From: Eukaryota sp. TZLM1-RC | Lineage: Eukaryota; Protista; Metamonada: BaSk clade | Assembly: GCA_040285825.1 (NCBI GenBank) | Contig: JAUPSS010000001.1 | Coordinates: forward strand, 3,224,001 to 3,288,000 | Length of the DNA stretch: 64,000 nucleotides | Direction: 5' to 3' | Shown: positions 29,001 through 63,916 of the stretch, piece by piece | How positions within the stretch are numbered: position 1 is the stretch's first letter | Layout of the letters: the number at the start of each line of letters is the position of its first letter | Translations under genes and position numbers: made by a program | The notes under the pieces: model-generated | Databases searched by the model: none | Told to the model about the DNA's origin: nothing | Seen by the model: the letters and a program-made list of their open reading frames with translations, nothing else

Positions 29001-29338
29001 TTTATGGGTTCTACCTTAGACTCTTTCCTTCTAATAAATTTTCTTTTACATTTTGTTTCAGAATTTGCCACATTATTTTTTCCAACATTGGGGCATGTTC
29101 GAGCATTATGTCCCTGTTGTCGACACTTTGAGCATCTGTAGGAGCGTGGCTTTGTTTTTGAACAAACTTTGTTTTCATCGTGATTGTCTAAAAATTCTGG
29201 ATCAGAAATTTTTTTGTCCAAAAATGAAGAGAGAAGAGGTTGAGGAGGAGAGGTGGAAAGGACGTCTTGAGCATCTTGTTGTCTATCGTTCTTTCTTTTG
29301 ACTCCATTAGAATCAGAAATTGATTCAGGCATCAACAA
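26083..29338 (-). mobile_element. Near-intact family-A CRE-like non-LTR retrotransposon; single ORF of ~1064 aa (ATG 29332, stop 26140) after correcting two 1-nt homopolymer deletions
   Basis: N-terminal CSKCRQQGHNARTC and CNTC..CLKC. RT: KSAGLSG, RPIAVSE, LDFSNAFNS, GVKQGDPLGP, YMDD, RHLG. Knuckle CICSNSPQLTLRHALNC. RLE: HDAVRD..EP..RGD..D..KHRKY. The breaks at 27540-27544 (T5; 6 in the 47 kb copy) and 26261-26266 (A6; 7 in the 16 kb copy) lie in homopolymers. The 5' end is not defined. Confidence 0.93.
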
Positions 29339-37217: not shown

Positions 37218-37462
37218 AAGTGAAGGAGTAAGTGGACAGAGTTGTTGTCCGTAGAATATCGGTCCAACAATGATTCATTGATCGAAATGATTTACAAACC
37301 TTTATCAATCGATCTTCCCCTCTCTTGCTCAACGACAACATCATGTGAGAAACTTGACTTCCTTCTCCAACATCGCCTTGTTTGCGCCTGTTCTTAGTTA
37401 GTTTTCACTGGTTCATGATGTTTAAATTTTCTGCGTATTCAGTATTGTTCATTTTTTCCCTA

Positions 37463-40400: not shown

Positions 40401-41260
40401 TGTGTCCAAAAAGAATTAGTTCTCAATATTGTAGAAATTATTTAAATGATTCAGAAAAAGAAAATTCTATTTGCAGTGGTAAAGTTGATTTAGCTGGTAA
40501 TTCTGGAAAATTTAAAGGCGTCACTGGTGATGATGACTGCACTTGGACCTTACCTTTAGAAATTAATGCTGTTTTTGAATTAAATCTAACAAATGTGGTA
40601 ATTCCAAGTAATTCAAATGGAATTGATGTACTTTGGAAATGGGGTAATCATGCTTTATTATTTGAAAGAATTAGAACAAGTACTTCTTTAAGAATTCTTC
40701 ATTCAGTTTTCCCATTATCTATATCAATTCCTTCAAATAACAAGGGAATTTCTTTTGATTCAAGCTTTAGAAACTTTGATAGAACCAAATGTCCCTCAAG
40801 AATTCCATCTCATCATTGCAGGAATGCCTTGTCAATAGCTAGCGCCTCATTCAACCAAAGAAGAAATCAACTTGTGGTTGTTTTCTCGGATTCAATTATA
40901 TCCAGGAAAATTAGTATTGACTGTGGATTAGTTTTTGAAGGTGTAAAAGGTCAATGTTTTGTAGAAGGAAATGAAGTAACTGCTAACTTGGAGTCTCCAC
41001 TTTCTAATTCCAGTGTTGCTTTGGTTCAAAATGATTTATGGCAAGCTGCGGTTTTAGATGTAAATGTAGTTGACGATAGCATCAGTTTTTCTTTGTTTGT
41101 GGTATTTGGTTTTGGCGTATTGATTGTTCTTGTAGCTCTAGCTGTCTATTTTTGCAGAAAGCCAAGCCCGAAACCAGTAATAGTTGATCCTCCCCATGGT
41201 GATGTTAGTTGCCATCGTTTTATGTGTAAATCCATGAATAGATGTTTTTGTAGCGTTTAG
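37463..41260 (+). CDS. Membrane-anchored subtilisin-like S8 protease with EGF and CUB-like domains, copy 2
   Basis: From MQRLLCV (37463), 1265 aa, with about 16 substitutions relative to copy 1 and an intact catalytic triad. Confidence 0.93.
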   Translation: MQRLLCVSLLLCLYVSAHLRSGNLEFDSSVSTPFGSSSSNGELLVIDWKSSTKDIDPPPKGSALLGDFISAGKQLVKVLSAEEFYSYLSRNHLVSAFLTPNLKLDPQLLDFNEDCLSINVELISPISNLNGTLSQLYLLTGTSELTLLDHSENSLVFSFCSSFSDILNGIASHSNVTWIDPHVEYEPSNCHASALIEGNSNGPSPVSGSNCPNEERSSQPQYFPFAAKGITGNNEIVTVIDSGVDTNHCFFKDENNIIEKGNLRSSISRARGSKHRKVVFYDDELGDGADVINHGTHVTGTVAGKSIGNNLWNSAHGVAPDSKVIIIDTNRPPSNGLSIPRDLIGRWLEPAYSVGSRIISNSWGSRLATSPYTSDSALWDRFVYNNREALVVFAAGNSGGSGTRTIGAAATAKNVLTVGASITSRNGVSGTCAVSSSICRSFGIWNSPEERANENVVASFSSRGFTDYGGIKPDVVSTGLPLTSANPGTNCGVIMKAGTSMAAPTVAGAAALLREYLNNNDIKPTASLLRSLIIGSAVPLNDNSGKVNWGNNKWVDLDEAPSSVYGYGRVNLKPLFESVVVSNEDHEISNSNPIKSHCFKTNSNGKVIVTLAWTDPQAFAGCQDCIINPLELIILDSSGKEISNLNKPFRHSTSDRLIIPSAAGNYQILIKGNGLSSSQTYSLSVIGDVDLIDCDSCPDNCNNNGQCLNGICKCNSGNLLNCGESCPNSCSNQGKCINGFCSCEFPFFGHDCSLYHAIGDNAVTIRDLDYHELPLIKGISNYKPGIDVVWRVLNPSGLDLKLNIANINLAEGHYLSIYSESGSTRTLISTIKDGNDQIFTISTNIRVVFTANSQGFSKGFDLFLGNSPKPQPKPTYCKEKTIIEKEKDSFGVEGKADCTWQLPLLENNLVELNLTNVFLKSGDLIDVNWKWNNHKLRLARISSSTERRVFHSLYPLSVHFVSSNNDSTFSASFNNIHRDLCPKRISSQYCRNYLNDSEKENSICSGKVDLAGNSGKFKGVTGDDDCTWTLPLEINAVFELNLTNVVIPSNSNGIDVLWKWGNHALLFERIRTSTSLRILHSVFPLSISIPSNNKGISFDSSFRNFDRTKCPSRIPSHHCRNALSIASASFNQRRNQLVVVFSDSIISRKISIDCGLVFEGVKGQCFVEGNEVTANLESPLSNSSVALVQNDLWQAAVLDVNVVDDSISFSLFVVFGFGVLIVLVALAVYFCRKPSPKPVIVDPPHGDVSCHRFMCKSMNRCFCSV

Positions 41261-41722
41261 GTGTAAATAAATTTTGGTTTGTTTTTTTTGGTTTTTTGGA
41301 TGTTTTAAATTGTATTAATGAATGAAATCCTTTAATAATGAGTTCATTTTTGATGACGTGTTAATTGTTGATTGTCGGTTATTCTGGTGGAAAACCACCA
41401 GTCCTAACCTTGGCAGAGTGGAATTCATTCCACATTCTTGTTCCATTTCAGTTTCCACTTTGATTTTGGAAAAAAAATCTATCTCCTTCCAACTTCCTCT
41501 GGGGCGAAAAGAGAGTTGCCATCATTCATATATGTTCAGTTGGTACTGAGTATACTGCTGACAAGGTGTTTCCATTTCGAGTCCTATTTCTATAGAAATC
41601 ATTCCATTTCTGGTATGAGATGAAAAGGAATGAAATTGCGAAAATCCAAATCTTAATAAATATGAGTTTTGTGTATTAATTGGCATTATTTCAAACACCA
41701 AAATTGCATCTTCCCTGCACCA

Positions 41723-42406
41723 ATGGCCAATGAATGGCATGACTATGATTCAGTTTCTTCTGCACTTGCTGAGAACCTAACGGCAACCGATCTTTCTAAA
41801 AGACCAGGTCCGGGCGGGAGCACCTTAACCTACCTTGAAGGGTGGAAAGTTGTACGCAAAGCCAATGAAATATTTGGCTTTGATGGATGGACTACTGAAG
41901 TTCGCAATATCGAAGTTGATTACATTGACGAAAATAATGGCCGCTTCTCTTGTGGTGTTTCTGCCCTTCTGCGTGTAGCCCTGAAAACTGGTTCATATCA
42001 CGAGGACATTGGTTACGGTACTGCTGAATCCCAGAGAAGCCGTGGAAGTGCTCTGAGTCTCGCCAAGAAGGAAGCCATTACTGACGGAGTAAAGAGGGCA
42101 CTCCGTTATTTTGGCAGTGCACTGGGAAACTCTGTTTATGATAAAGATCATATTAAAGATGTGTGGAGGGCTCCTCAGGCCATGACTTTCTCTAAATGTG
42201 AACCAAGTACAAATACAAATGGGAATACAGATGCCAATATCACTTCAAACCCCAATAGCAATTTAAATGTAAATTCAAATATTCATAAGAGTTTAGCAAA
42301 GGTAAAACCACAAGATTTAGATAGCAATACTGAAAGACTTCGCTTGGATCGAGCTTTGAGACCAAAACCAAGCCTAAATGCACCGTTAATGAAACTTCCA
42401 AGGTAA
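41723..42406 (+). CDS. RAD52: Rad52/Rad22 family DNA annealing protein
   Basis: SKRPGPGG..LTYLEGWKV..ANEIFGFDGW, HEDIGYG and AKKEAITDGVKRALRYFGSALGN..YDK. Likely start MANEW at 41723. A possible 40-nt terminal intron (42403-42442) would change the end to PSVF. Confidence 0.93.
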   Translation: MANEWHDYDSVSSALAENLTATDLSKRPGPGGSTLTYLEGWKVVRKANEIFGFDGWTTEVRNIEVDYIDENNGRFSCGVSALLRVALKTGSYHEDIGYGTAESQRSRGSALSLAKKEAITDGVKRALRYFGSALGNSVYDKDHIKDVWRAPQAMTFSKCEPSTNTNGNTDANITSNPNSNLNVNSNIHKSLAKVKPQDLDSNTERLRLDRALRPKPSLNAPLMKLPR

Positions 42407-42789: not shown

Positions 42790-44766
42790 TTAGAGCTTCA
42801 ACAAGGCCAAACCTCCGTCCAAACCAGAAGCGATTAAGTGGCTCTTGTTATGAGTGAAAGACAACCCACTTACTGCTTTGCTCAAACAATCAAACTCTCC
42901 TTCAACTTCACTTGTGTCATAATCCAACACACAAACATGACCAGATCGATGTCCAATAGCCAGGGTGGAATCATCACTGCTAATGGCGAGGCAAGTTAAT
43001 TCACCATCCATCTCTACTTGCCTCAACTCTTCAAAAGTAACTGCATCCCAATACCTAACCAAACAGTCAAAGGAAACGGTAACAATTTGCGTTGCGTCTG
43101 AGGTCACTGCGAGATCAGAAAATGCTGTGGGTGCGGTGAGAGAACCCATTCGCTTCATTTCATCAAGGTCAATTAAAACTATTGATCCATCTTCAGAAGC
43201 TGAGCACAGTATATTTTGTTCGAGTTTAAGGGAATTTACGACAGATCTGTGCTCTTTAAAAGAATGAATTAATTGTGGAGAATTAGAAAACTTCCAAATT
43301 CTGATGAGCGAGTCCACGCCTGCTGTAATGATATAATCATCAGTAACTAACAACGAAGTAACACCTCCAGGCTTTGAATGTTTACCAACCATAATCTCAG
43401 CCTTATGGGCATTTTGAATACTAAACAAGAGCTTGCCGCTTTCAGGTGCAAAGCCTCTCACATTACCATCAGACCAACCGGAAACGATGACGTCACCGTT
43501 TGGACTTATTGCAGCAGAAAGGACATCTACACCTGGGCAACAAATGCGTAAACGTTCTTTTAACAAGGGGGTAACAACCTGAGCTTTTCTCGTCACCTCA
43601 CGTGACCCTTGACGATTTTTGACCGTTCTTGACTTTCCTTGACCATGATTTGCTGGTTTTTCTAGTATATTAGTCCACAAACGTACATCTGGCCCTCCTG
43701 CTGATAGAAAAACTAGCCCATAATCAGGAAGAATTGAAGGAAAAGAGCATGTGGTGATAGGGACGGGATGTGCCGTTGAGATCAGAGTAGATTCAATTTG
43801 ATCATTTAATGAGATTAAGTAAAAATTTGATTCACAGGTAGTTACCAAAAAGTCTTGGTCGGTCAAGCCAGTCTTGCATATTCCAAACACACCACCTACA
43901 ATTTTGACCTGCTTCTCTACCACAAAACTAGAAACGGTATTTCTACCTACTTTCTTCTCTACCTTCTTTAAAACGGCAACGGTACCTTCCCCTGTTCCTA
44001 CCACTACTTCATCTCTGTTAAGAGCAACACATGACGTCACACCACCTTGAAGAAGTGACTTGACTGGACCAGAGGCCTTAAGACGCATGGAAGAGAGAGA
44101 AATTTCTAACAAATCACCAGAAGATGTACCAGCAAACGCCACGTCACCAGTGTCGTCTCCGAGAATATCAAGAGAAATGATACTGCGGCGAATAGACCCC
44201 ATAGAGACTGGTTCTGATGTAAATCTTCGGGCTTCATTGTTGAACGTCCACACCAAAGCTTGTTCTACTCCAACTGTGAGAAATTCAATCTTGTCAGTTG
44301 ATGAGAGAGGTTTGACGATTGTTTGGGTAAAGCGGCCAAGGGAAGAAGAGGCAACGGCGGATATGTCACTAGACGTGAATTCCCACAATGCGATCAGGTT
44401 GTCATCTGGGCCACCAAGGGAAGCAATGTAGTTTCCGTCGTGAGAGAAGACAACCGATTCTACGCGTACTTTGTGGAGAGAGAGGCGTTGGACGATTGAG
44501 AAATCTTCGAGGTCCCATACGATGATGTCGGCAACAAAACCTGCATGGGTTTGTTGTCCAGATACAAGGTATCGGCCAGAAGGAGATAAAGAGAAGCAGG
44601 TGATGTCACCGGAATGGCCTCTTAAAACTTGTTTGAAATTGCGATCTGATGTGGAACGACATATCAGGTGAGCAGAAATTGTATAAATGTAATGATCGGA
44701 GTTAGGAATACATAGTATACCAGAAGGAACCTTGCCAGAGAGGCCAACTAGCTCTTCAAGTTGCAT
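42790..44766 (-). CDS. CFAP52: Cilia- and flagella-associated WD40 protein 52 (WDR16/FAP52)
   Basis: LRGHSGDITC..SPSGRYLVSGQQTHAGFVADIIVWD, LSLHKVRVE, ASLGGPDD, IVSGWSDG.VRGFAPESGKL and KEH..V match the CFAP52 pattern. Confidence 0.9.
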   Translation of the reverse strand: MQLEELVGLSGKVPSGILCIPNSDHYIYTISAHLICRSTSDRNFKQVLRGHSGDITCFSLSPSGRYLVSGQQTHAGFVADIIVWDLEDFSIVQRLSLHKVRVESVVFSHDGNYIASLGGPDDNLIALWEFTSSDISAVASSSLGRFTQTIVKPLSSTDKIEFLTVGVEQALVWTFNNEARRFTSEPVSMGSIRRSIISLDILGDDTGDVAFAGTSSGDLLEISLSSMRLKASGPVKSLLQGGVTSCVALNRDEVVVGTGEGTVAVLKKVEKKVGRNTVSSFVVEKQVKIVGGVFGICKTGLTDQDFLVTTCESNFYLISLNDQIESTLISTAHPVPITTCSFPSILPDYGLVFLSAGGPDVRLWTNILEKPANHGQGKSRTVKNRQGSREVTRKAQVVTPLLKERLRICCPGVDVLSAAISPNGDVIVSGWSDGNVRGFAPESGKLLFSIQNAHKAEIMVGKHSKPGGVTSLLVTDDYIITAGVDSLIRIWKFSNSPQLIHSFKEHRSVVNSLKLEQNILCSASEDGSIVLIDLDEMKRMGSLTAPTAFSDLAVTSDATQIVTVSFDCLVRYWDAVTFEELRQVEMDGELTCLAISSDDSTLAIGHRSGHVCVLDYDTSEVEGEFDCLSKAVSGLSFTHNKSHLIASGLDGGLALLKL

Positions 44767-46805: not shown

Positions 46806-48580
46806 TTCTTATCTTTAAGGTGACTTAAAGATTGTGAAAAGAGCAACTGTTTGTTTTAAAGAATTATTTACCAAAATTGGCATCCGACTTAATTTACTTA
46901 AATGTGTTTTGTTATTGAATTCTGCAGTTTCTACAACAGTAGATGGTATTGAAATTCAAGCCAAATTATATTCAATTGATGCTATTCGTCATTTGGGTTC
47001 GTTTTTAGGAAATAATGATGAAATTACCAAAAAATTGTTTGCAAAGTTTAACTCAATTTCCGAAAAATTGACCTAATGATGAAATTTTTTTACTGTACTG
47101 TATTGTTATTGAAATAAAATTCTATCTAGTATTCAATGTGCTCCAAACAAACATCAATATTCCATGATGAAATTGGACATACAGAAACATATCAAACTTT
47201 TATTATAAGACTTTGTTTTAGCTCCAACTTTAATCATATATTTCGATCTACAAATCCTCTCGTCACTAGGCCTTTGGCTCAAAAGTTTAATGAGTTACGT
47301 CCAAAATTCTTGTTACAATTACTAGGATGTGAAATGTTCCAAATTCCAGATCATGCTTACCTTAGTCCACATTATGGCGGTTTAGGTTGGACAAAGGCTT
47401 CTATTCTTATTTCATGTGCTTTTATCGGTGGATGCAGAAATGCAATCTTTGAGTTTTCCGAAAGATTTGTAGATTGGGAAGATATATTATTGACAACGCA
47501 AAGTTCTACTGATTTTGCATTGAATGAAGAAAATTCAAAAATTGATGTAGAAAAATGGAGTCGATGCTTTCCCCAATCATTCAATGGCAATATATCAGAA
47601 AGGAGAATTATTTATTTTTAAAATACACTCTTCGAACATTACAGAAACGATTGACTGAAATGTATGAAAATGATCTTTATAATAATATATGCAGCTCGGC
47701 TGTCTTAAATCAAGATCATCACTCATTGCTGTTGGAAAAAGGTGTTTGTGAAAATCAGTCGTCAGATTCTTCACTGTTTATAACCATTGTACCACCAAAT
47801 TTTGGATTGTGTTCAACTAATGAAGCATTTGTAACAAAAATGAGATTATATTTGAATATCCCCATTAATCAATTATTATCAAAAGAAAAATGTATTTGTT
47901 CGAATTAACCTCAACTCACTGTGCATCATGCTCTGAGTCGTTCTAAATTGATAGCTTATCGTTCTTCAATACATGATGCTGTTAGAGATACTGTTTTCAA
48001 TATGGCACGAACTGCAAGAATCTCGTGTATCAAAGAGCCTCTGCTGAAGGAAACATCGTCATTGAATAATTTTGGCTTTGATGACAGAGGTGATGTATAC
48101 TGTGATCGGATTAAGAACTCTGAAGCTATTGTTGACTTTGTCTCATGTAATGTTGCAAATGATACTTTGGTTCACAGAAGAAAACTTAATCCTGTGGCTG
48201 CTCTTGAATTTAAAGCACAAGAAAAACATAGAAAATATGACAAAGATATTGAAGAGGCTAATGCTGATAGAAATAGACCACTTGTTTTTACTGTTTTCCC
48301 ATTTTCAATAAACGGAACACTATCAGTAGAAGCAGGAACTTTTTTGAATGATTTTCAAAAAATGGTTCAAGAAAAAACAATGAAAAGATTTGATACTTTT
48401 TATGGCGCTCTCGAAATCAATTTGCCATTACTAAAAGATTGCCTCGGTTTTTCAATCGAATAAGAGAAGTTTTAGCTAGAAATAGAGCAGATCAAAATTT
48501 TGTAGAAGAAATCTTGGTTCAATGAATTTCGTCCCTTCATTAGTTTTGGGGTTTTTTTGTCAACTGTGCAAGTTCAATAA
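46799..48580 (+). mobile_element. 5'-truncated family-A element (from just after YMDD to the 3' end)
   Basis: ORFs 46834-47076, 47136-47621, 47555-47908 and 47921-48463 are homologous to 26187-27770. Ends GTGCAAGTTCAATAA. Confidence 0.92.
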
Positions 48581-49089: not shown

Positions 49090-51490
49090 GATTTTTTTGT
49101 TGCCTTTCATGCACAAGAATAAACTTCCTATCACTGCAATTGAAGTTCTTAAAGCTATTCAAAAATTACCAAAGGGGAAAGCAGCAGGCCCATCTGGAAT
49201 TTCTTTTGATCTCTTAAAAATAGCGTGTTCCAGTGCTCCCGAAATTGCGGATGATCTAGCCCATTATTTTCAACAATTAATTGTTTTGAAAATTAATCCT
49301 CCATTTGAATTACTCGCTGCACGTCTGATTGCTTTAGTAAAGCCTGGAAACGGAAGCAAACCTGATGGAATACGCCCAATTGCTGTTGGTGAATCTCTTT
49401 CTCGTTTGCTGGCATCAATTGTCTTCGATCGTGTCAAAGACAAAGCTTCTACATTTTTGAATCCTCATCAATTTGGAATCAAAACAATTGATGGTGCTTC
49501 TGTTGCTGCTATTGCCTCTGATACCTTTTTTAATGCAGAGGAAAATAATTTTATTTTTAATCTCGACTTTAAAAATGCTTTTAATTCTGTAAAGCGAGAA
49601 GCACTTTTTGAAGTTATTAAATCTGATTTTCCTGAGCTATCGAGTTTTTTCTACCATTTTTATGGGAAAGAATCAGATTTAATTTTTAATTCATTTGGTC
49701 TTAAATCATCTTCTGGTGTGAAGCAAGGTGATCCTTTAGGCCCATTATTGTTTTGTTTAGCTATTCACAAAACTTTAAATATCATTAAGCAAAAATACCC
49801 TTCTATAAAAATAGTTGCTTATATGGATGATATATCCTTGATTGGTTCATTTGATTTACTAGAATTGGTTGCTCAAGAAATTGCTGATTCATATGAAAAT
49901 ATTGGGCTTCATCTTAATGCGAGCAAATGCCTTCTGATTGGCTCTTCTGCTCAAGATCTCGTGATAAACGATTCTATTGTCCCTTTTACTAATTATAGTA
50001 GTGATGCTTTTAAGTTCCTTGGTTGTTGGTTAGGAAACGTGCCTCAAATTCAGAATGAATTGCAAGTTATTTTGGAGAAAATGAAAATTGAACTTGATTC
50101 AATTTCTTCTTTAGATATAGAAAAGCAAATTGAATTTTTCATGCTTAAAATTTGCTACACTGGGAGAATAACCCACATTTTGAGATCTTGTGCTCCATCC
50201 ATAGCATTAGATTTTTGTCGTTCATTTAATTCAATGGGAACAGAATTTTTTGCTGATTTATTGGATGTAGAACCAGGAATGTTGAAAAGCCATTTATTTT
50301 CTTCAGCAAATTTGGGTGGTATTGGATTAACTAAGTCTTCAATTTTGTGTCAATCAGCATTCTTGGGTGGTGGCAAAAATTATATTTATGAATTTTCTCG
50401 TAGATTTCCTGATGATTCTCATCTGTTAGTTCCCAATTGCAGTCCCTATTTGTATGAGTTATCTTGTGAACTTGAAAAATTGCCGCCACAAATTTGGACC
50501 AAATGTTTTCCTCAATCAATTCAAGAAATTCCAAACCGATCTCTTTTTAATTTACAGTTTTGCTGTAAAAAGCTTCAACAAAAATTGTCAAAGATTTTTG
50601 AAAGCTTGGATTTTGATGTTAGACTTGGCTTGGCCAAGAAAAAGAATCCCGCTTTTGCAAATCTTTTACAAGATATGTGTGATAGTACTTCTTCTGCCTT
50701 AGTAACAACAATTCCACAAGTTTATGGTACTCTCTTAACCGATTCTGCTTGACTCTGAATATGAGATTTCGTTCCTTTATCTGGCCTGATAATTTACCTC
50801 ATAATTTAATTTGTAAATGTTCTCGAGAAATTACAACTACTCATTTGTTAAATTGTAAACATTTTATTACTTTTAGAAGCAAGATTCATGATGCTGTAAG
50901 AGACCAGTTATATTGTATGTGTAAATCTCATAGAATTGAATCCTTCTTGGAACCTCTGTTGTCAAATCTGTTTGATGCTGAAGATGATTTTCATAAGAAT
51001 AATAGAGGTGATGTTATATTACCTGGATTAGATGGAAGTTTCATTTTATTGGATGTAATGTCTGTTGATCCTTGTAATGCCTCAAATGAAAGGCTTGTTA
51101 ATTCTGAAATTCATAATCCTCTTTCAAATGCTGAAAATTTCAAACTCAAAAAATACAATGAACCTTTGTCCAAATTGGCCAATCTACAGCATGCAAAATA
51201 CAATTTGTATCCATTTGTATTTTCCCTTTTTGGTTCTCTTGCACCAACTGCTTTACGTTTTTTGGATGATTTTGAATTGATTGTCAAGAGAAGAACTGGG
51301 AGAAATTTCAACATATTGTTTTGGCAAAATAGAATTGTGTTTTCTATTTTTAAGGGGATGTTGAAGAAGGTTTCTGATGCTTTGCTGTCTCTTGGTTCTC
51401 ACTATGAGAGAGTTGCATCTAGTGTTTTTGTTTTGGGAGAGATGGATTTTTTAGATGTTGATTTATAGGCTTTGAATAAAATTAAAATAC
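49090..51490 (+). mobile_element. Family-B CRE-like element with RT, CCHC and RLE essentially intact; N-terminus missing
   Basis: KAAGPSG, RPIAVGE, LDFKNAFNS, GVKQGDPLGP, YMDD, KFLG; CKCSREITTTHLLNC; IHDAVRD..EP..RGDV..DV..KLKKY. One 1-nt break at ~50750 (TG where the 13 kb copy has TGG, Trp). AATAAA follows the stop. Confidence 0.93.
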
Positions 51491-51710
51491 TTGAAAAAAA
51501 AGAAATAAACTAAATAAAACAATTACAAGATGACGTGATCCAATTTCCTAATAGGGAAAGTCTCGTTTTGATTTTTTTGATTTATAGAGAGCAAGACCTC
51601 AAGATTTTGAATGTGCTTGAATTTGTATAGGAGTGGAATGTTTTGAACGTATTTACTAAGAAAAAACTATAAATCATTAATCACTCATTTTATTCAAACT
51701 TTTGCTCACA

Positions 51711-52444
51711 CTACATTTCATGGTCACTAATGGGATGTTTGGGTTTTTCAAAGCAGGGTTGATCAGTACCGTGGCAAACCATGGGATCTTGCCAGAACTT
51801 GCAGTAGCTGCAGGGAGGACAGAAGTGCTTGGGAGTCCATTTGAGACACCAGTCGGGAAGCTTGATGACCATTTTTTGATCAGTGTGAACAGGAGGTTTA
51901 CCATCTTCAAGATCGAGCTTCATTTCAAGATATCCAGTGTTCTTTGGATCAATTCTAATAATGCCCTTCCAATGACGTTGGAATCCAGGTCTAGAAAGCC
52001 ACATATGAACTTCATCCTTTTCAGAAATGGTGCCGGTAACTTTCCACCAGAAGCCCTGGGCCCACATGGTTCCATGGAAGGATCCCTTACCATCGGCAAA
52101 GATTTGAGCAGTAACAGGCCATTTACGAATTAATTGTCCCTTAGGTCCAAATTCGTACTTATCACCAGACCATCCCCCATGACCAGTAAGAACATCAAAG
52201 CGACGATCAGACCAGGGGTATCTAGGGCAAATGGGTCTTCCATCACAAGGGATATCGAGGTGTTGGCATACAGGGGGATCTTGCCAGACTTTGCAGTAGG
52301 AATCTTCCCTAAAGAATTGGCAAAGTTCATCACCCTTCATTGGTCTTTCATGACCAGAATGAAGTTCAACTGCTAGAACAGCAACAGTAATTGCAAGGCT
52401 ATGGTTAAATCAAATTCCATGGCATACAAGACAAGTAGCTTCAT
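51711..52444 (-). CDS. Secreted Cys/Trp-rich protein, 234 aa, copy 1 (exons 52428-52444, 51711-52398)
   Basis: Splicing GTATGCCATGGAATTTGATTTAACCATAG (52399-52427) gives MKLLVFLAITVAVLAVELHSGHERP in frame with the 209-aa ORF. Confidence 0.88.
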
Positions 52445-53313
52445 CGTGATCCAGAGGAGTGGGATTTTTTGGTTAATGGCGTTTTTGTACTGTGCTGTAG
52501 TCTTACTGTAGTCTCTGTTTACAGTAGGATCGACTTTACAGTTGAGCTCTACTACGAGCATTTGATTGGGCATAATGTCTGCATTGTTTAAATTGTTTTA
52601 CATGTTTTAACAGTTGTTTTCGGCTGTATTTGAGTTTTTGTGATTCACCACTCATTAAGAATTCAACTTTAGTATTTTTAACTAAAATTGTTGTTGTTTC
52701 CTTTAGAATGGTCATTATTTGGTAGAATTGATCACGACTTGGTAATTTTTAGCAAGAATCTTTTGGTGTGTTTCAAAAGTTTTTTTTTCTTGCCCCATCC
52801 AGTGTTTCAATGTTTTCTATTTCCAGGAAAAAGTAAACCTAATTTCGTGGAGAATGGTAACTGTATTACAGAAATGGTCAAGATCGACCAATAAGCGTGA
52901 TTGAACTGCAAGTTAAATGACATTTGTTTGAAACAGGAAATCAAAACACCAAACATTAAGGACCCTTGCCGATGGAACTTTGTTGAAAACTGGGTTGGCG
53001 ATCAAACTACCCACAGCTACGTGACTCAATAATACATACCCTCAACTCTTTGATTAAGCTTATTAAAACCTCCATTTGCAACCAAGAGCTACACTTTCAA
53101 GAAATGATTGGATGCACTAACCTCCACAAACGTGAAGCACAGGAACCAACTTGAATCAGAGTTGTGCCTCAACATCAAGGAGCACTCATTGCTACATATA
53201 GTTTCTCAAAAGTTCCCTCATCATTAAAGCACTTTAGTACTTTTGTTCCCATTCACCCACTATCATACATAAAAAATCATTATTCACTCTATTTATTCAA
53301 AATCATGCTCAGA

Positions 53314-54047
53314 CTACATTTCATGGTCACTTATGGGATGTTTGGGTTTTTCAAAGCAGGGTTGATCAGTACCGTGGCAAACCATGGGATCTTGCCAGAA
53401 CTTACAGTAGCTGCAGGGAGGACAGAAGTGCTTAGGAGTCCACTTGAGACACCAATCAGGAAGCTTGATGACCATTTTTTGATCAGTGTGAACAGGAGGT
53501 TTGCCATCTTCAAGATTGAGCTTCATTTCAAGACATTCAGTGTTCTTTGGATCAATTCTGATAATGCCCTTCCAATGACGTTGGAATCCAGGTCTAGAAA
53601 GCCACATATGAACTTCATCCTTTTCAGAAATGGTGCCGGTAACTTTCCACCAGAAGCCCTGGGCCCACATGGTTCCATGGAAGGATCCCTTACCATCGGC
53701 AAAGATTTGAGCAGTAACAGGCCATTTACGAATTAATTGTCCCTTAGGTCCAAATTCGTACTTATCACCAGACCATCCCCCATGACCAGTAAGAACATCA
53801 AAGCGACGATCAGACCAGGGGTATCTAGGGCAAATGGGTCTTCCATCACAAGGGATATCGAGGTGTTGGCATACAGGGGGATCTTGCCAGACTTTGCAGT
53901 AGGAATCTTCCCTAAAAAATTGGCAAAGTTCATCACCTTTCATTGGTCTTTCATGACCAGAATGAAGTTCAACTGCTAGAACAGCAACAGTAATTGTAAG
54001 GCTATGGTTAAATCAAATTCCATGGCATACAAGACAAGTAGCTTCAT
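53314..54047 (-). CDS. Secreted Cys/Trp-rich protein, copy 2
   Basis: Same exon/intron structure; variable patch TECLEMKLNL. Confidence 0.88.
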
Positions 54048-54916
54048 CGTGATCCAGAGAAGTGGAGCTTTTGGTTAATGGCGTTTTTGTACTGTGCTGT
54101 AGTCTTACTGTAGTCTCTGTTTACAGTAGGATCGACTTTACAGTTGAGCTCTACTACGAGCTTTTGATTGGGCAAATTGTATGCTAGGTTTAAATTGTTT
54201 TACATGTTTTTAACAGTTGTTTTTCGGCTTTATTTGAGTTTTTTTGTGATTAACCACTCATTATGAATTCAACTTTAGTATTTTTAACTAAAATTGTTGT
54301 TGTTTTCTTTAGAATGGTCATTATTTGGTAGAATTGATCACGACTTGGTAATTTTTAGCAAGAATCTCTTGGTGTGTTTCAAAAGTTTTTTCTTGCCCCA
54401 TCCAGTGTTTCAATGTTTTCTATTTCCAGGAAAAAGTAAACCTAATTTCGTGGAGAATGGTAACTATATTAAAGAAATGGTCAAGATCGACCAATAAGCG
54501 TGATTTTACTGCAAGTTAAATGACATTTGTTTGAAACAGGAAATAAAAAAACCAAACATTAAGGACCCTTGCCAATGGAACTTTGTTGAAAACTGGGTTG
54601 GCGATCAAACTACCCACAGCTACGTGACTCAATAATACATACCCTCAACTCTTTGATTAAGCTAATTACAACGTCCATTTGCAACCAAGAGCTACACTTT
54701 CAAGAAATGAGTGGATGCACTAACCTCCATAAACGTGAAGCACATGAATCAACTTTAATCACAGTCGTGCTTCAACAGCAAGGAGCACTTATTGCTACAT
54801 ATAGTTTCTCAAAAGTTCCCTCATCATTGAAGCACTTTAGTACTTTTGTTCCCATTCACCCACTTTCATACATAAACAATCATTATTCACTCTTTTTATT
54901 CAAAATCATGCTCAGA

Positions 54917-55650
54917 CTACATTTCATGGTCACTAATGAGATGTTTGGGTTTTTCAAAGCAGGGTTGATCAGTACCGTGGCAAACCATGGGATCTTGCCA
55001 GAACTTACAGTAGCTGCAGGGAGGACAGAAGTGCTTAGGAGTCCACTTGAGACACCAATCAGGAAGCTTGATGACCATTTTTTGATCAGTGTGAACAGGA
55101 GGTTTGCCATCTTCAAGATTGAACTTCATTTCAAGATATTCAGTGTTCTTTGGATCAATTCTGATAATGCCCTTCCAATGACGTTGGAATCCAGGTCTAG
55201 AAAGCCACATATGAACTTCATCCTTTTCAGAAATGGTGCCGGTAACTTTCCACCAGAAGCCCTGGGCCCACATGGTTCCATGGAAGGATCCCTTACCATC
55301 AGCAAAGATTTGAGCAGTAACAGGCCATTTACGAATTAATTGTCCCTTAGGTCCAAATTCGTACTTATCACCAGACCATCCCCCATGACCAGTAAGAACA
55401 TCAAAGCGACGATCAGACCAGGGGTATCTAGGGCAAATGGGTCTTCCATCACAAGGGATATCGAGGTGTTGGCATACAGGGGGATCTTGCCAGACTTTGC
55501 AGTAGGAATCTTCCCTAAAAAATTGGCAAAGTTCATCACCTTTCATTGGTCTTTCATGACCAGAATGAAGTTTAACTGCTAGAACAGCAACAGTAATTGT
55601 AAGGCTATGGTTAAATCAAATTCCATGGCATACAAGACAAGTAGCTTCAT
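54917..55650 (-). CDS. Secreted Cys/Trp-rich protein, copy 3
   Basis: Same structure; patch TEYLEMKFNL, C-terminus KHLISD. Confidence 0.88.
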
Positions 55651-56517
55651 CGTGATCCAGAGAAGTGGGGCTTTTTTGGTTAATGGCGTTTTTGTACTGT
55701 GCTGTAGTCTTACTGTAGTCTCTGTTTACAGTAGGATCGACTTTACAGTTGAGCTCTACTACGAGCTTTTGATTGGGCATAATGTCTGCATTGTTTAAAT
55801 TGTTTTACATGTTTTAACAGTTGTTTTCGGCTTTATTCGAGTGTTTGTGATAAACCACTCATTAATAATTCAACTTTACTATTTTTAACTAAAATTGTTG
55901 TTGTTTTCTTTAGAATGGTCATTATTTGGGAGAATTGATCAAGAGTTGGTAATTATTAGCAAGAATCTTTTGGTGTGTTTCAAAAGTTTTTTTTCTTGCC
56001 CCCTCCAGTGTTTCAATGTCTTTTATTTTTAGGAAAAAGTAAACCTAATTTCGTGGAAAATGGTAACTGTATTAAAGAAATCTTCAAGATCGACCAATAA
56101 GTGTGATTTAACTGCAAGTTAAATGACATTTGTTTGAAACAGGAAATAAATAAACCAAACATTAAGGACCCTTGCCAATGGAACTGTGTTGAATACTGGG
56201 TTGGTGATCAAACCACCCAAAGCTACGTGACTTAATAATACATACACAAACTTTTTGATTAAGCTTATTACAACCTCCATTTGCAACCAAGAGCTGCACT
56301 TTCAAGAAATGATTGGATGCAGTAACCTCCACAAACGTGAATACATGAACCAGCTTGAATCACAGTCGTGTTTCAACAGCAAAGACCACTTATTGCTAAA
56401 AATAGTTTCTCAAAAGTTCCCTCATCATTGAAGCACTTTAGTATTTTTGTTCCCATTCACACACTATCATACATAAAAAATTATTATTCACTCTATTTAT
56501 TCAAACTCTTGCTCACA

Positions 56518-57251
56518 CTACATTTCGTGGTCACTAATGGGATGTTTGGGTTTTTCAAAGCAAGGTTGATCAGTACCGTGGCAAACCATTGGATCTTGCC
56601 AGAACTTGCAGTAGCTGCAGGGAGGACAGAAGTGCTTAGGAGTCCACTTGAGACACCAATCGGGAAGCTTGATGACCATTTTTTGATCAGTGTGAACAGG
56701 AGGTTTGCCATCTTCAAGATTGAGGTTCATTTCAAGATATTCAGTGTTCTTTGGATCAATTCTGATAATACCCTTCCAATGACGTTGGAATCCAGGTCTA
56801 GAAAGCCACATATGAACTTCATCCTTTTCAGAAATGGTGCCGGTAACTTTCCACCAGAAGCCCTGGGCCCACATGGTTCCATGGAAGGATCCCTTACCAT
56901 CGGCAAAGATTTGAGCAGTAACAGGCCATTTACGAATTAATTGTCCTTTTGGTCCAAATTCGTACTTATCACCAGACCATCCCCCATGACCAGTAAGAAC
57001 ATCAAAACGACGATCAGACCAGGGGTATCTAGGGCAGATGGGTCTTCCATCACAAGGGATATCGAGGTGTTGGCATACAGGGGGATCTTGCCAGACCTTG
57101 CAGTAGGAATCTTCCCTAAAAAATTGGCAAATTTCATCACCCTTCATTGGTCTTTCATGACCAGAATGAAGTTCAACTGCTAGAACAGCAACAGTAATTG
57201 TAAGGCTATGGTTAAATCAAATTCCATGGCATACAAGACAAGTAGCTTCAT
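56518..57251 (-). CDS. Secreted Cys/Trp-rich protein, copy 4
   Basis: Same structure; patch TEYLEMNLNL. Confidence 0.88.
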
Positions 57252-58112
57252 CGTGATCCAGAGAAGTGGAGATTTTTTGGTTTATGGCGTTTTTGTACTG
57301 TGCTGTAGTCTTACTGTAGTTTCTGTTTACAGTAGGATCGACTTTACAGTTGAGCTCTTCTACAAGCTTTTGATTGGGCAAATTGTCTGCATTGTTTCAA
57401 TTGTTTTACATGTTTTAACAGTTGTTTTCGGCTTTATTTGAGTTTTTGTGATTAACCACTCGTTATTAATTCAACTTTAGTCTTTTTAACTAAAATTGTT
57501 GTTTTTTTGAATGGTCATTATTTGGTAGAATTGATCACGAGTTGGTAATTTTTAGCAAGATTCTCTTGGTGTGCTTCAAAAGTATTTTCCTTGCCCCCTC
57601 CAGTGTTTCAATGTCTTTTATTTTTAGGAAAAAGTAAACCTAATTTCGTGGAAAATGGTAACTGTATTAAAGAAATCTTCAAGATCGACCAATAAGTGTG
57701 ATTTAACTGCAAGTTAAATGACATTTGTTTGAAGCAGGAAATAAATAAACCAAACATTAAGGACCCTTGCCAATGGAACTGTGTTGAATACTGGGTTGGT
57801 GATCAAACCACCCAAAGCTACGTGACTTAATAATACATACACAAACTTTTTGATTAAGCTTATTACAACCTCCATTTGCAACCAAGAGCTGCACTTTCAA
57901 GAAATGATTGGATGCAGTAACCTCCACAAACGTGAATACATGAACCAGCTTGAATCACAGTCGTGTTTCAACAGCAAAGACCACTTATTGCTAAAAATAG
58001 TTTCTCAAAAGTTCCCTCATCATTGAAGCACTTTAGTATTTTTGTTCCCATTCACACACTATCATACATAAAAAATCATTATTCACTCTATTTATTCAAA
58101 CTCTTGCTCACA

Positions 58113-58845
58113 CTACATTTCGTGGTCACTAATGGGATGTTTGGGTTTTTCAAAGCAAGGTTGATCAGTACCGTGGCAAACCATTGGATCTTGCCAGAAC
58201 TTGCAGTAGCTGCAGGGAGGACAGAAGTGCTTAGGAGTCCACTTGAGACACCAATCGGGAAGCTTGATGACCATTTTTTGATCAGTGTGAACAGGAGGTT
58301 TGCCATCTTCAAGATTGAGGTTCATTTCAAGATATTCAGTGTTCTTTGGATCAATTCTGATAATACCCTTCCAATGACGTTGGAATCCAGGTCTAGAAAG
58401 CCACATATGAACTTCATCCTTTTCAGAAATGGTGCCGGTAACTTTCCACCAGAAGCCCTGGGCCCACATGGTTCCATGGAAGGATCCCTTACCATCGGCA
58501 AAGATTTGAGCAGTAACAGGCCATTTACGAATTAATTGTCCTTTTGGTCCAAATTCGTACTTATCACCAGACCATCCCCCATGACCAGTAAGAACATCAA
58601 AACGACGATCAGACCAGGGGTATCTAGGGCAGATGGGTCTTCCATCACAAGGGATATCGAGGTGTTGGCATACAGGGGATCTTGCCAGACCTTGCAGTAG
58701 GAATCTTCCCTAAAAAATTGGCAAAGTTCATCACCCTTCATTGGTCTTTCATGACCAGAATGAAGTTCAACTGCTAGAACAGCAACAGTAATTGTAAGGC
58801 TATGGTTAAATCAAATTCCATGGCATACAAGACAAGTAGCTTCAT
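58113..58845 (-). CDS. Secreted Cys/Trp-rich protein, copy 5 (1-nt deletion in a G5 run at ~58675; sequencing error or pseudogene)
   Basis: ACAGGGGATC where other copies have ACAGGGGGATC; otherwise nearly identical to copy 4. Confidence 0.75.
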
Positions 58846-59710
58846 CGTGATCCAGAGAAGTGGAGATTTTTTTGGTTTATGGCGTTTTTTGTACTGTGCT
58901 GTAGTCTTACTGTAGTTTCTGTTTACAGTAGGATCGACTTTACAGTTGAGCTCTTCTACAAGCTTTTGATTGGGCAAATTGTCTGCATTGTTTCAATTGT
59001 TTTACATGTTTTAACAGTTGTTTTCGGCTTTATTTGAGTTTTTGTGATTAACCACTCGTTATTAATTCAACTTTAGTCTTTTTTTAACTAAAATTGTTGT
59101 TTTTTTGAATGGTCATTATTTGGTAGAATTGATCACGAGTTGGTAATTTTTAGCAAGATTCTCTTGGTGTGCTTCAAAAGTATTTTCCTTGCCCCCTCCA
59201 GTGTTTCAATGTCTTTTATTTTTAGGAAAAAGTAAACCTAATTTCGTGGAAAATGGTAACTGTATTAAAGAAATCTTCAAGATCGACCAATAAGTGTGAT
59301 TTAACTGCAAGTTAAATGACATTTGTTTGAAACAGGAAATAAATAAACCAAACATTAAGGACCCTTGCCAATGGAACTGTGTTGAATACTGGGTTGGTGA
59401 TCAAACCACCCAAAGCTACGTGACTTAATAATACATACACAAACTTTTTGATTAAGCTTATTACAACCTCCATTTGCAACCAAGAGCTGCACTTTCAAGA
59501 AATGATTGGATGCAGTAACCTCCACAAACGTGAATACATGAACCAACTTGAATCACAGTCGTGTTTCAACAGCAAAGACCACTTATTGCTAAAAATAGTT
59601 TCTCAAAAGTTCCCTCATCATTGAAGCACTTTAGTATTTTTGTTCCCATTCACACACTATCATACATAAAAAATCATTATTCACTCTATTTATTCAAACT
59701 CTTGCTCACA

Positions 59711-60447
59711 CTACATTTCATGGTCACTAATGGGATGTTTGGGTTTTTCAAAGCAAGGTTGATCAGTACCGTGGCAAACCATTGGATCTTGCCAGAACTT
59801 GCAGTAGCTGCAGGGAGGACAGAAGTGCTTAGGAGTCCACTTGAGACACCAATCAGGAAGCTTGATGACCATTTTTTGATCAGTGTGAACAGGAGGTTTG
59901 CCATCTTCAAGATTGAGCTTCATTTCAAGATATTCAGTGTTCTTTGGATCAATTCTGATAATGCCCTTCCAATGACGTTGGAATCCAGGTCTAGAAAGCC
60001 ACATATGAACTTCATCCTTTTCAGAAATGGTGCCGGTAACTTTCCACCAGAAGCCCTGGGCCCACATGGTTCCATGGAAGGATCCCTTACCATCGGCAAA
60101 GATTTGAGCAGTAACAGGCCATTTACGAATTAATTGTCCCTTTTTAGGTCCAAATTCGTACTTATCACCAGACCATCCCCCATGACCAGTAAGAACATCA
60201 AAGCGACGATCAGACCAGGGGTATCTAGGGCAAATGGGTCTTCCATCACAAGGGATATCGAGGTGTTGGCATACAGGGGATCTTGCCAGACCTTTGCAGT
60301 AGGAATCTTCCCTAAAAAATTGGCAAAGTTCATCACCTTTCATTGGTCTTTCATGACCAGAATGAAGTTCAACTGCTAGAACAGCAACAGTAATTGTAAG
60401 GCTATGGTTAAATCAAATTCCATGGCATACAAGACAAGTAGCTTCAT
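59711..60447 (-). CDS. Secreted Cys/Trp-rich protein, copy 6 (small compensating indels near 60140 and 60275-60295)
   Basis: 210-aa frame with local changes (CKGLARSP, GPKKG) at homopolymers; patch TEYLEMKLNL. Confidence 0.78.
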
Positions 60448-61314
60448 CGTGATCCAGAGAAGTGGAGCTTTTGGTTAATGGCGTTTTTGTACTGTGCTGT
60501 AGTCTTACTGTAGTCTCTGTTTACAGTAGGATCGACTTTACAGTTGAGCTCTACTACGAGCTTTTGATTGGGCAAATTGTATGCTAGGTTTAAATTGTTT
60601 TACATGTTTTAACAGTTGTTTTCGGCTTTATTTGAGTTTTTGTGATTAACCACTCATTATGAATTCAACTTTAGTATTTTTAACTAAAATTGTTGTTGTT
60701 TTCTTTAGAATGGTCATTATTTGGTAGAATTGATCACGACTTGGTAATTTTTAGCAAGAATCTCTTGGTGTGTTTCAAAAGTTTTTTCTTGCCCCATCCA
60801 GTGTTTCAATGTTTTCTATTTCCAGGAAAAAGTAAACCTAATTTCGTGGAGAATGGTAACTATATTAAAGAAATGGTCAAGATCGACCAATAAGCGTGAT
60901 TTTACTGCAAGTTAAATGACATTTGTTTGAAACAGGAAATAAAAAAACCAAACATTAAGGACCCTTGCCAATGGAACTTTGTTGAAAACTGGGTTGGCGA
61001 TCAAACTACCCACAGCTACGTGACTCAATAATACATACCCTCAAACTCTTTTGATTAAGCTAATTACAACGTCCATTTGCAACCAAGAGCTACACTTTCA
61101 AGAAATGAGTGGATGCACTAACCTCCACAAACGTGAAGCACATGAATCAACTTTAATCACAGTCGTGCTTCAACAGCAAGGAGCACTTATTGCTACATAT
61201 AGTTTCTCAAAAGTTCCCTCATCATTGAAGCACTTTAGTACTTTTGTTCCCATTCACCCACTTTCATACATAAACAATCATTATTCACTCTTTTTATTCA
61301 AAATCATGCTCAGA

Positions 61315-62048
61315 CTACATTTCATGGTCACTAATGAGATGTTTGGGTTTTTCAAAGCAGGGTTGATCAGTACCGTGGCAAACCATGGGATCTTGCCAGA
61401 ACTTACAGTAGCTGCAGGGAGGACAGAAGTGCTTAGGAGTCCACTTGAGACACCAATCAGGAAGCTTGATGACCATTTTTTGATCAGTGTGAACAGGAGG
61501 TTTGCCATCTTCAAGATTGAGGTTCATTTCAAGATATTCAGTGTTCTTTGGATCAATTCTGATAATACCCTTCCAATGACGTTGGAATCCAGGTCTAGAA
61601 AGCCACATATGAACTTCATCCTTTTCAGAAATGGTGCCGGTAACTTTCCACCAGAAGCCCTGGGCCCACATGGTTCCATGGAAGGATCCCTTACCATCGG
61701 CAAAGATTTGAGCAGTAACAGGCCATTTACGAATTAATTGTCCTTTTGGTCCAAATTCGTACTTATCACCAGACCATCCCCCATGACCAGTAAGAACATC
61801 AAAACGACGATCAGACCAGGGGTATCTAGGGCAGATGGGTCTTCCATCACAAGGGATATCGAGGTGTTGGCATACAGGGGGATCTTGCCAGACCTTGCAG
61901 TAGGAATCTTCCCTAAAAAATTGGCAAAGTTCATCACCCTTCATTGGTCTTTCATGACCAGAATGAAGTTCAACTGCTAGAACAGCAACAGTAATTGTAA
62001 GGCTATGGTTAAATCAAATTCCATGGCATACAAGACAAGTAGCTTCAT
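61315..62048 (-). CDS. Secreted Cys/Trp-rich protein, copy 7
   Basis: Same structure; mosaic of a copy-3-type 3' part and a copy-4-type 5' part. Confidence 0.88.
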
Positions 62049-62910
62049 CGTGATCCAGAGAAGTGGAGATTTTTTGGTTTATGGCGTTTTTGTACTGTGC
62101 TGTAGTCTTACTGTAGTTTCTGTTTACAGTAGGATCGACTTTACAGTTGAGCTCTTCTACAAGCTTTTGATTGGGCAAATTGTCTGCATTGTTTCAATTG
62201 TTTTACATGTTTTAACAGTTGTTTTCGGCTTTATTTGAGTTTTTGTGATTGACCACTCGTTATTAATTCAACTTTAGTATTTTTAACTAAAATTGTTGTT
62301 TTTTTTGAATGGTCATTATTTGGTAGAATTGATCAAGAGTTGGTAATTATTAGCAAGATTCTCTTGGTGTGTTTCAAAAGTATTTTCCTTGCCTCATCCA
62401 GTGTTTCAATGTCTTTTATTTTTAGGAAAAAGTAAACCTAATTTCGTGGAAACTGGTAACTGTATTAAAGAAATCTTCAAGATCGACCAATAAGTGTGAT
62501 TTAACTGCAAGTTAAATGACATTTGTTTGAAACAGGAAATAAATAAACCAAACATTAAGGAGCCTTGCCAATGGAACTGTGTTGAATACTGGGTTGGTGA
62601 TCAAACCACCCAAAGCTACGTGATTTAATAATACATACACAAACTATTTGATTAAGCTTATTACAACCTCCATTTGCAACCAAGAGCTGCACTTTCAAGA
62701 AATGATTGGATGCAGTAACCTCCACAAACGTGAATACATGAACCAACTTGAATCACAGTCGTGTTTCAACAGCAAAGACCACTCTTTGCTAAAAATAGTT
62801 TCTCAAAAGTTCCCACATCATTGAAGCACTTTAGTATTTTTGTTCCCATTCACACACTATCATACATAAAAAATCATTATTCACTCTATTTATTCAAACT
62901 CTTGCTCACA

Positions 62911-63644
62911 CTACATTTCATGGTCACTAATGGGATGTTTGGGTTTTTCAAAGCAAGGTTGATCAGTACCGTGGCAAACCATTGGATCTTGCCAGAACTT
63001 GCAGTAGCTGCAGGGAGGACAGAAGTGCTTAGGAGTCCACTTGAGACACCAATCGGGAAGCTTGATGACCATTTTTTGATCAGTGTGAACAGGAGGTTTG
63101 CCATCTTCAAGATTGAGGTTCATTTCAAGATATTCAGTGTTCTTTGGATCAATTCTGATAATACCCTTCCAATGACGTTGGAATCCAGGTCTAGAAAGCC
63201 ACATATGAACTTCATCCTTTTCAGAAATGGTGCCGGTAACTTTCCACCAGAAGCCCTGGGCCCACATGGTTCCATGGAAGGATCCCTTACCATCGGCAAA
63301 GATTTGAGTAGTAACAGGCCATTTACGAATTAATTGTCCTTTTGGTCCAAATTCGTACTTATCACCAGACCATCCCCCATGACCAGTAAGAACATCAAAA
63401 CGACGATCAGACCAGGGGTATCTAGGGCAGATGGGTCTTCCATCACAAGGGATATCGAGGTGTTGGCATACAGGGGGATCTTGCCAGACCTTGCAGTAGG
63501 AATCTTCCCTAAAAAATTGGCAAAGTTCATCACCCTTCATTGGTCTTTCATGACCAGAATGAAGTTCAACTGCTAGAACAGCAACAGTAATTGTAAGGCT
63601 ATGGTTAAATCAAATTCCATGGCATACAAGACAAGTAGCTTCAT
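62911..63644 (-). CDS. Secreted Cys/Trp-rich protein, copy 8
   Basis: Same structure; A78T (ORF numbering). The upstream spacer diverges after ~63778. Confidence 0.88.
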
Positions 63645-63916
63645 CGTGATCCAGAGAAGTGGGGTTTTTTTGGTTAATGGCGTTTTTGTACTGTGCTGTA
63701 GTCTTACTGTAGTCTCTGTTTACAGTAGGATCGACTTTACAGTTGAGCTCTACTACGAGCTTTTGATTGGGCAAATTGTGGTGTATTTTCAATATGTCAA
63801 AAAGATTTTGCTGCTTTATTGGATTTTTTGTGATACACCACTCATTATGAAATGAATTTCAGTACTTTGAACAAAAATTGATGATTTCTTTTGTTGTTTT
63901 GTGACGTTCTTTATCG

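Follow-up and report, generated by a model that had tools for sequence, protein, structure and literature searches.

An amplified, spliced gene family in Skoliomonas litria encodes a Cys-module and β-barrel protein behind Giardia-like promoter boxes: a candidate encystment protein

The window analyzed here is a 64,000-nucleotide (nt) stretch of contig JAUPSS010000001.1 (positions 3,224,001 to 3,288,000) of isolate TZLM1-RC (Skoliomonas litria), and one end of it carries eight tandem copies of a small gene. S. litria and two sister isolates are anaerobic soda-lake flagellates (PMC11603281). The array belongs to a real, undescribed, genus-wide amplified family that matches no named family. Each gene is interrupted by a short intron, is preceded by a cluster of CTACAG boxes, and encodes a signal peptide of about 15 residues, a Cys module, a predicted β-barrel, a second Cys module, a short linker, and a tail resembling the KDEL retrieval signal of the endoplasmic reticulum (ER). 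With a probability of roughly 0.45, we propose that the product is a bulk encystment protein, held in the ER and then deposited as a disulfide-linked component of the cyst wall or plug. The features of the array are as follows, in window coordinates.

51671..63880, minus strand: eight units of ~1.6 kb in tandem, each a gene with its spacer
51711..52444, minus strand: unit 1 gene, 234 residues after splicing
52428..52444, minus strand: unit 1 exon 1, 17 nt, start of the signal peptide
52399..52427, minus strand: unit 1 intron, 29 nt, GT..AG, phase 2
52245..52334, minus strand: Cys module 1, residues 28-57, GD-x-x-C-x8-SYCK-x-W-x4-VC-x6-C
51858..52205, minus strand: predicted eight-stranded antiparallel β-barrel, residues 71-186
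51753..51821, minus strand: second Cys module in its short form (residues 199-221); its CPPC motif holds the additional invariant Cys202
51714..51725, minus strand: C-terminal KDEL-like tetrapeptide DHEM
52495..52541, minus strand: unit 1 promoter cluster, CTACAG twice (-56, -67) and two more TACAG cores
53314..54047, minus strand: unit 2 gene, intact; intron 54002-54030; boxes 54097-54143
54917..55650, minus strand: unit 3 gene, intact; intron 55605-55633; boxes 55702-55748
56518..57251, minus strand: unit 4 gene, intact; intron 57206-57234; boxes 57303-57349
58113..58845, minus strand: unit 5 gene, frameshifted at ~58679 (C run); intron 58800-58828
59711..60447, minus strand: unit 6 gene, open; module 1 has indels that compensate each other, and one codon is added; intron 60402-60430
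61315..62048, minus strand: unit 7 gene, intact, mosaic; intron 62003-62031
62911..63644, minus strand: unit 8 gene, intact (P9112_014350); intron 63599-63627; boxes 63696-63742

Start codons lie at 52444, 54047, 55650, 57251, 58845, 60447, 62048 and 63644, all on the minus strand, so that neighboring units are 1594-1603 nt apart. Exon 2 is an open frame of 228 codons in six of the eight units. Unit 5 has lost one nucleotide within the C run, making it either a pseudogene or a sequencing error. In unit 6, indels at ~60295 and ~60280 compensate each other and three extra nucleotides lie at ~60140-60146. All of these indels fall in homopolymer runs of a nanopore-based assembly and may therefore be nanopore errors. 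Open reading frames of 80-228 residues on the opposite strand of the array were rejected as shadows of the real gene.

Homology searches were run with exon 2; exon 1 (five codons) is too short to serve as a query, and full-length versions are the NCBI proteins. Exon 2 matches hypothetical proteins of TZLM1-RC and of the sister isolates GEM-RC1 and TZLM3-RCL (GEM-RC and RCL below). Every array unit consists of a 17-nt exon 1, a 29-nt GT-AG intron of the same sequence in all eight copies, and exon 2, and the unspliced reading frame terminates after 23 codons. The initial annotation had described this intron as restoring a signal peptide, and the spliced N-terminus is a typical one, with an 11-residue hydropathy of 2.9 (signal peptides and transmembrane segments were judged from hydropathy). 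In the paralogs and the RCL ortholog, an intron of 28-31 nt follows nucleotide 17; in GEM-RC it follows nucleotide 20, one codon later. These introns differ internally in sequence and each completes a signal peptide. Because the position is conserved across paralogs and two other skoliomonads while the sequence has diverged, we regard the intron as real; this cross-species conservation and the NCBI gene models together establish splicing at the level of sequence.

The eight units correspond to consecutive locus tags P9112_014343-014350. The signal peptide is hidden in a track of open reading frames, as the initial annotation held, but the NCBI models of seven of the eight units (P9112_014344-014350) are already spliced. 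The model of unit 1, P9112_014343 (277 residues; region 51711-52573), starts upstream, within the promoter, and has no signal peptide at its start; it is probably mis-annotated. The leader quoted earlier, with LAIT, holds for unit 1 but not for the other seven, which read LTIT.

All eight units are preceded by two CTACAG boxes, near -56 and -67, and by TACAG cores near -80 and -97. The cluster is retained in the paralogs, in module-only genes, in GEM-RC and in RCL, and the remaining upstream DNA is unalignable. We scored a promoter as positive if it held at least two TACAG cores, including one CTACAG, within -125 to -35, a cut-off fixed after six family promoters had been seen. Eight of nine non-redundant module-bearing genes from three species passed, versus 0 of 41 other genes, against a background of 0.4% of tiles; the Fisher p of 1.7e-8 overstates independence, since these promoters share common ancestry. 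A tenth module-bearing gene had two cores and no full box, and ten more control genes were negative (total 8/10 vs 0/51). CTACAG (23x) and ACTGTAG (44x) led the top words of a de novo count in fold enrichment.

CTACAG is the Myb2 site of Giardia (PMC3656124), where the cwp1 promoter has functional Myb2 sites at -45, -59 and -66 (PMC9547401) and all 13 of 13 core early encystation genes have Myb sites (PMC4807828). G. muris retains a similar motif (PMC7641422), and Spironucleus encystation genes share a conserved upstream motif (PMC3916229). As with the Giardia Myb2 encystation regulon (cwp1-3 and GalNAc-pathway genes), the Skoliomonas genes place several CTACAG-type boxes 45-100 nt before the start codon of a Cys-containing protein with a signal peptide, a likeness known here from promoter sequence. 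Unlike CWP1-3, the window protein has no leucine-rich repeats by Pfam or in its model, and there is no sequence or fold link between them. The boxes had been overlooked by the initial annotation. It offered cyst wall, extrusome, prey-capture lectin and effector roles, of which the boxes would favor the cyst wall alone, and none of the others gains evidence.

A divergent gene pair elsewhere in the assembly (L004:4724-6736; P9112_005987-005989) consists of a barrel-family paralog and a two-module protein transcribed from a 140-nt gap with shared TACAG boxes; next to it is a second two-module gene with five CTACAG boxes.

A full HMMER search returned 58 proteins, nearly all matched through the Cys module. 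From 154 distinct instances, the module is about 30 residues long with the consensus (C/G)D-x-(Y/F)-C-x8/9-C-x8-C-x6-C, in which S-Y-C-K-x-W is almost invariant. Module 1 of the window protein matches the profile with 51 bits and the short module 2 with 30 bits, and a profile built without skoliomonad rows still recovers both. This bears out the earlier description of two Cys modules around a β core. Among 54 module proteins, Pfam gave no hevein/CBM18, CBM14 or CBM1 family at E 0.05, and the module profile had no PDB match; judged by these profiles, the module is an unnamed domain with no Pfam family. Ig-like matches of P0080 and P0082 in the full search were repeats scoring by accumulation and were discarded.

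The named carriers of the module are Perkinsus marinus, P. olseni and P. chesapeaki, with up to 11 copies per protein (for example the uncharacterized Cys-repeat proteins KAF4670284.1, Pmar_PMAR012010 and Pmar_PMAR028680); further carriers are transcript-sized contigs of other protists. The initial annotation had pointed to similar SYCKxW modules in Perkinsus secreted proteins, and this proved right, the 30-residue module of the Perkinsus proteins being homologous. The Perkinsus proteins differ from ours in having S/T/P-rich linkers, no barrel, and no KDEL-like tail, and are possibly the "cysteine-rich modular proteins" of PMC8062965. Outside Skoliomonas, modules are repeated on linkers with 35% S/T/P or fused to ML, FAD-oxidase (FAD-binding) or DUF3586 domains, which is the usual layout of accessory binding modules. 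Individual proteins of other organisms (P0034, P0074, P0077, P0040 and P0071) combine the module with ML (five copies), an FAD-binding-4 oxidase, DUF3586, a weak DUF7492 match, and a propeller-like domain with a Thr-rich linker. Another two-module protein (P0096, L012:10001-10312) has an additional Cys immediately preceding SYCK, a trait it shares with module 2 of the array protein, and its total Cys number is odd.

Eleven mature Cys are present in family members of all three skoliomonad species. Eight probably belong to the modules, and two probably clamp the barrel (Cys63-Cys190), a pairing suggested by their co-occurrence; Cys202 would be left over for intermolecular bonds.

For the proposed encystment protein, we infer timing, location and ligand as follows. 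A Myb2-like factor would activate the whole array at encystment, the multiple copies giving a brief burst of high output. The protein would enter the ER, and its weak retrieval tail would concentrate it there or in ER-derived vesicles until it is released to build the double wall or the plug. Through the conserved aromatic face of SYCKxW, both small disulfide knots may bind wall polysaccharide, with the barrel as a spacer or oligomerizing core and the odd eleventh Cys cross-linking molecules. The skoliomonad RCL forms double-walled, plugged cysts, reported to be unique among metamonads (PMC11603281). This cyst-forming isolate has at least seven family copies, in support of the proposal.

Known cyst-wall proteins offer a parallel. 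Entamoeba Jacob and Jessie and Acanthamoeba Leo and Luke are multicopy cyst-wall lectins with a signal peptide and repeated small disulfide modules that carry conserved aromatics and are separated by spacers. The skoliomonad family shares these traits and, by analogy, probably works like such protist cyst-wall Cys-knot proteins. It differs in its Cys spacing (C-x8/9-C-x8-C-x6-C), in giving no Pfam chitin-binding match, and in having a folded barrel as spacer.

Several points weigh against an encystment role, besides the common ancestry of the promoters. The promoter cut-off was set with six family members in view, and among four later genes two passed, one passed partly, and one failed. The meaning of the CTACAG box in Skoliomonas is borrowed from Giardia. 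Cysts are reported for RCL only, not for S. litria; wall proteins would not be expected to carry a retrieval tail; and Pfam and PDB searches link the module to no known carbohydrate-binding family.

The tail is a reason to consider an ER-resident helper of encystment or secretory load. Such a helper, be it a lectin-like carrier, a chaperone or a thiol partner, would bind wall precursors in the ER lumen, be recycled via the KDEL receptor, and never enter the wall. Full-length family members end in eight distinct tetrapeptides (DHEM, DHEI, DAEL, EHEL, DEEL, DEEM, HKEL, HEEV), all x-x-E-[LMIV], with the Glu invariant behind a variable linker, and three module-only paralogs end in MNDL or HDEI. 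An ending of the form [DE][LMIV] occurs in 11 of 18 skoliomonad module proteins versus 4 of 84 others. The x-x-[ED]-L pattern occurs in paralogs and orthologs (DAEL, EHEL, DEEL, HKEL), and the window copies end in DHEM. An invariant CPPC motif also speaks for such a helper. The tail makes the label "secreted" only an assumption: plain secretion overlooks the conserved C-terminus, and the protein may be retained in the ER.

However, the most amplified copies carry the weakest tails (DHEM, DHEI), several boxed paralogs have none, and one GEM-RC copy ends before the tail (P0023 and P0030 are incomplete GEM-RC copies, the other breaking off once module 1 and a single barrel strand have been encoded). 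A total of fifteen gene copies points to bulk material, and module relatives elsewhere resemble extracellular mucin-type proteins. We rate a permanently ER-resident helper as somewhat improbable, though it is the best of the alternatives. Bulk cargo with a retrieval tail has precedent: plant KDEL cysteine proteases and ER-body glucosidases are KDEL-tailed and stored in ER-derived bodies. The array product would resemble them as a bulk lumenal protein with possible later release, by analogy and not homology.

It is also possible, but unlikely, that the protein is secretory and unrelated to cysts (a surface coat, extrusome, food-vacuole protein or prey-binding lectin); CTACAG would then control a different regulon in Skoliomonas, for instance one for starvation or stress. 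The bacterivorous lifestyle, the lack of reported cysts in S. litria, and the fusion of the module to an ML lipid-recognition domain in a protist are consistent with this. On the other side, the sequence, number and position of the boxes agree with Giardia cyst-wall promoters, and ordinary secretory genes, namely two subtilisins and an α-mannosidase, lack the cluster.

We used AlphaFold (AF2) to examine the region between the modules. With a 47-row alignment it predicted an eight-stranded antiparallel barrel with a predicted local distance difference test score (pLDDT) of ~90, and in the same model the modules form a short helix plus a small hairpin (pLDDT 60-76). Single-sequence prediction was poor (pLDDT 42). 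The barrel dominated the fold search, whose result thus speaks for the barrel and not for the modules. Its structural matches were of about equal quality, with Z 12 for de novo barrels, 11.6 for barrels of the OmpA type, 11.3 for a domain of an amine dehydrogenase and 9-10.6 for avidins. Shape searches with Foldseek and in the Atlas returned generic barrels only (NHBA-C, nitrobindin, avidins), and an OAA-lectin row in the ESM Atlas (0.79) scored too low to count as a lead. Neither sequence searches of Pfam and the PDB nor feature searches of the ESM Atlas gave anything significant for the mature protein, core profile or module, in keeping with the original failure to name a family, and a metagenome scan found no relatives.

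A membrane β-barrel, raised by the OmpA-like score, was rejected because by inspection the outward residues are polar and a hydrophobic belt is absent. As first described, the protein lacks a transmembrane helix or glycosylphosphatidylinositol tail by hydropathy scan, the highest 19-residue mean after the signal peptide being 0.04-0.17.

The barrel had been suggested to bind a small ligand, and an avidin- or lipocalin-like scavenger of biotin or a hydrophobic ligand would fit its topology and size; agroavidin superposes with Z 10.6 and a root-mean-square deviation of 2.3 over 101 residues, and other avidins score 9-9.6. Yet de novo barrels, OmpA-type barrels and the amine-dehydrogenase domain reach at least the same scores (Z 11.3-12.0), which makes the fold a generic one and the avidin match not specific. 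There is no Pfam Avidin (PF01382) or PDB sequence match for exon 2, the paralogs or the core profile, and biotin-binding residues are not recognizable. The invariant columns of the core alignment are D, W, G, G, G, V, G, L and L, Gly and hydrophobic positions without a conserved polar set like the Asn/Ser/Tyr of avidin (register to avidin set by eye). This composition suggests that the barrel is structural rather than a ligand pocket, and we consider a scavenger very improbable.

The barrel domain was found in skoliomonads only, including three further architectures. RCL1_008911 (P0039, L010:8001-9426) fuses module and barrel to a C-terminal region matching Pfam BfoA_N/BfoA_C, has a CTACAG cluster in its promoter, and is possibly an enzyme of the same regulon. 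P9112_006061 (P0032, L009:8001-9122) has two barrel-plus-module repeats and neither boxes nor tail. P9112_000757 (P0042, L011:10001-11185) has long Asn/Glu/Gln low-complexity insertions in its barrel loops, and boxes are present.

S. litria has 12 near-identical and three diverged family copies in total: the window array, a second array of four copies ~160 kb away, and three diverged paralogs elsewhere. GEM-RC has at least ten genes, including a five-copy tandem, and RCL at least seven copies. Within the array, genes differ by 0.1-3.3%, mostly at synonymous sites, and spacers by up to 8.6%. Among intact copies, the ratio of nonsynonymous to synonymous polymorphism (pN/pS) is 0.12, which indicates purifying selection. 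Unit 7 has a 5' half of the unit 4/5/8 type and a different 3' half; this mosaic look and the array divergence are as expected from unequal crossover. Beyond unit 8 lies a pol retrotransposon gene of the long terminal repeat (LTR) type (L006:1-6600), so the eight units are the whole array in this assembly. The exact copy number could be off by one or two because some neighboring units are almost identical. Read mapping to the array gave shallow DNA contigs only and yielded neither a joint nor a copy number. The small family tree was mostly unresolved, and no conclusions were drawn from it.

That the array is an assembly artefact expanded from one or two genes, or the intron unused, is conceivable for a nanopore assembly in which the divergence between units 4 and 5 is 0.1% and the second array holds two identical units, but the low pN/pS, the diverged spacers, the second array, the five-copy array in the independent GEM-RC assembly, and an intron conserved in position and diverged in sequence reduce this to a negligible chance.

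The rest of the window holds other features. Two inverted, near-identical genes (30450-34247, minus strand; 37382-41260, plus strand) encode subtilisins (S8) that carry EGF repeats and are anchored in the membrane at their C-terminus; upstream of them there is no CTACAG cluster. Broken copies of a non-LTR retrotransposon lie at 1417-2955, 13005-14087, 26187-29338, 47136-48463 and 49097-51468, with RVT_1 confirmed for two; one copy ends ~200 nt from the left edge of the array. Housekeeping genes encode a DHX37-like helicase (3381-6446), a TLDc protein (16923-17795), a large tuberin-like Rap-GAP (18923-24394), Rad52 (41669-42406) and a WD40/EML-type propeller protein (42790-44766).

More broadly, and only tentatively, the Myb2/CTACAG switch may predate Fornicata and in skoliomonads drive a different set of wall proteins, an ER-stored, disulfide-cross-linked family that forms the double wall or plug. 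Its members would combine a new barrel domain with a new four-Cys module that binds polysaccharide and also occurs in Perkinsus wall proteins. The array protein is a concrete candidate component of skoliomonad cysts, from a free-living soda-lake relative of Giardia. The promoter box offers a simple genome scan for listing a putative encystment regulon. If the encystment role is true, the Giardia Myb2 element would extend to the sister group of Fornicata, and cysts would be predicted in S. litria and GEM-RC, where none are reported. More than 150 instances of the module were found, heavily repeated in the shellfish parasite Perkinsus, and assigning its ligand would annotate a large uncharacterized family there.

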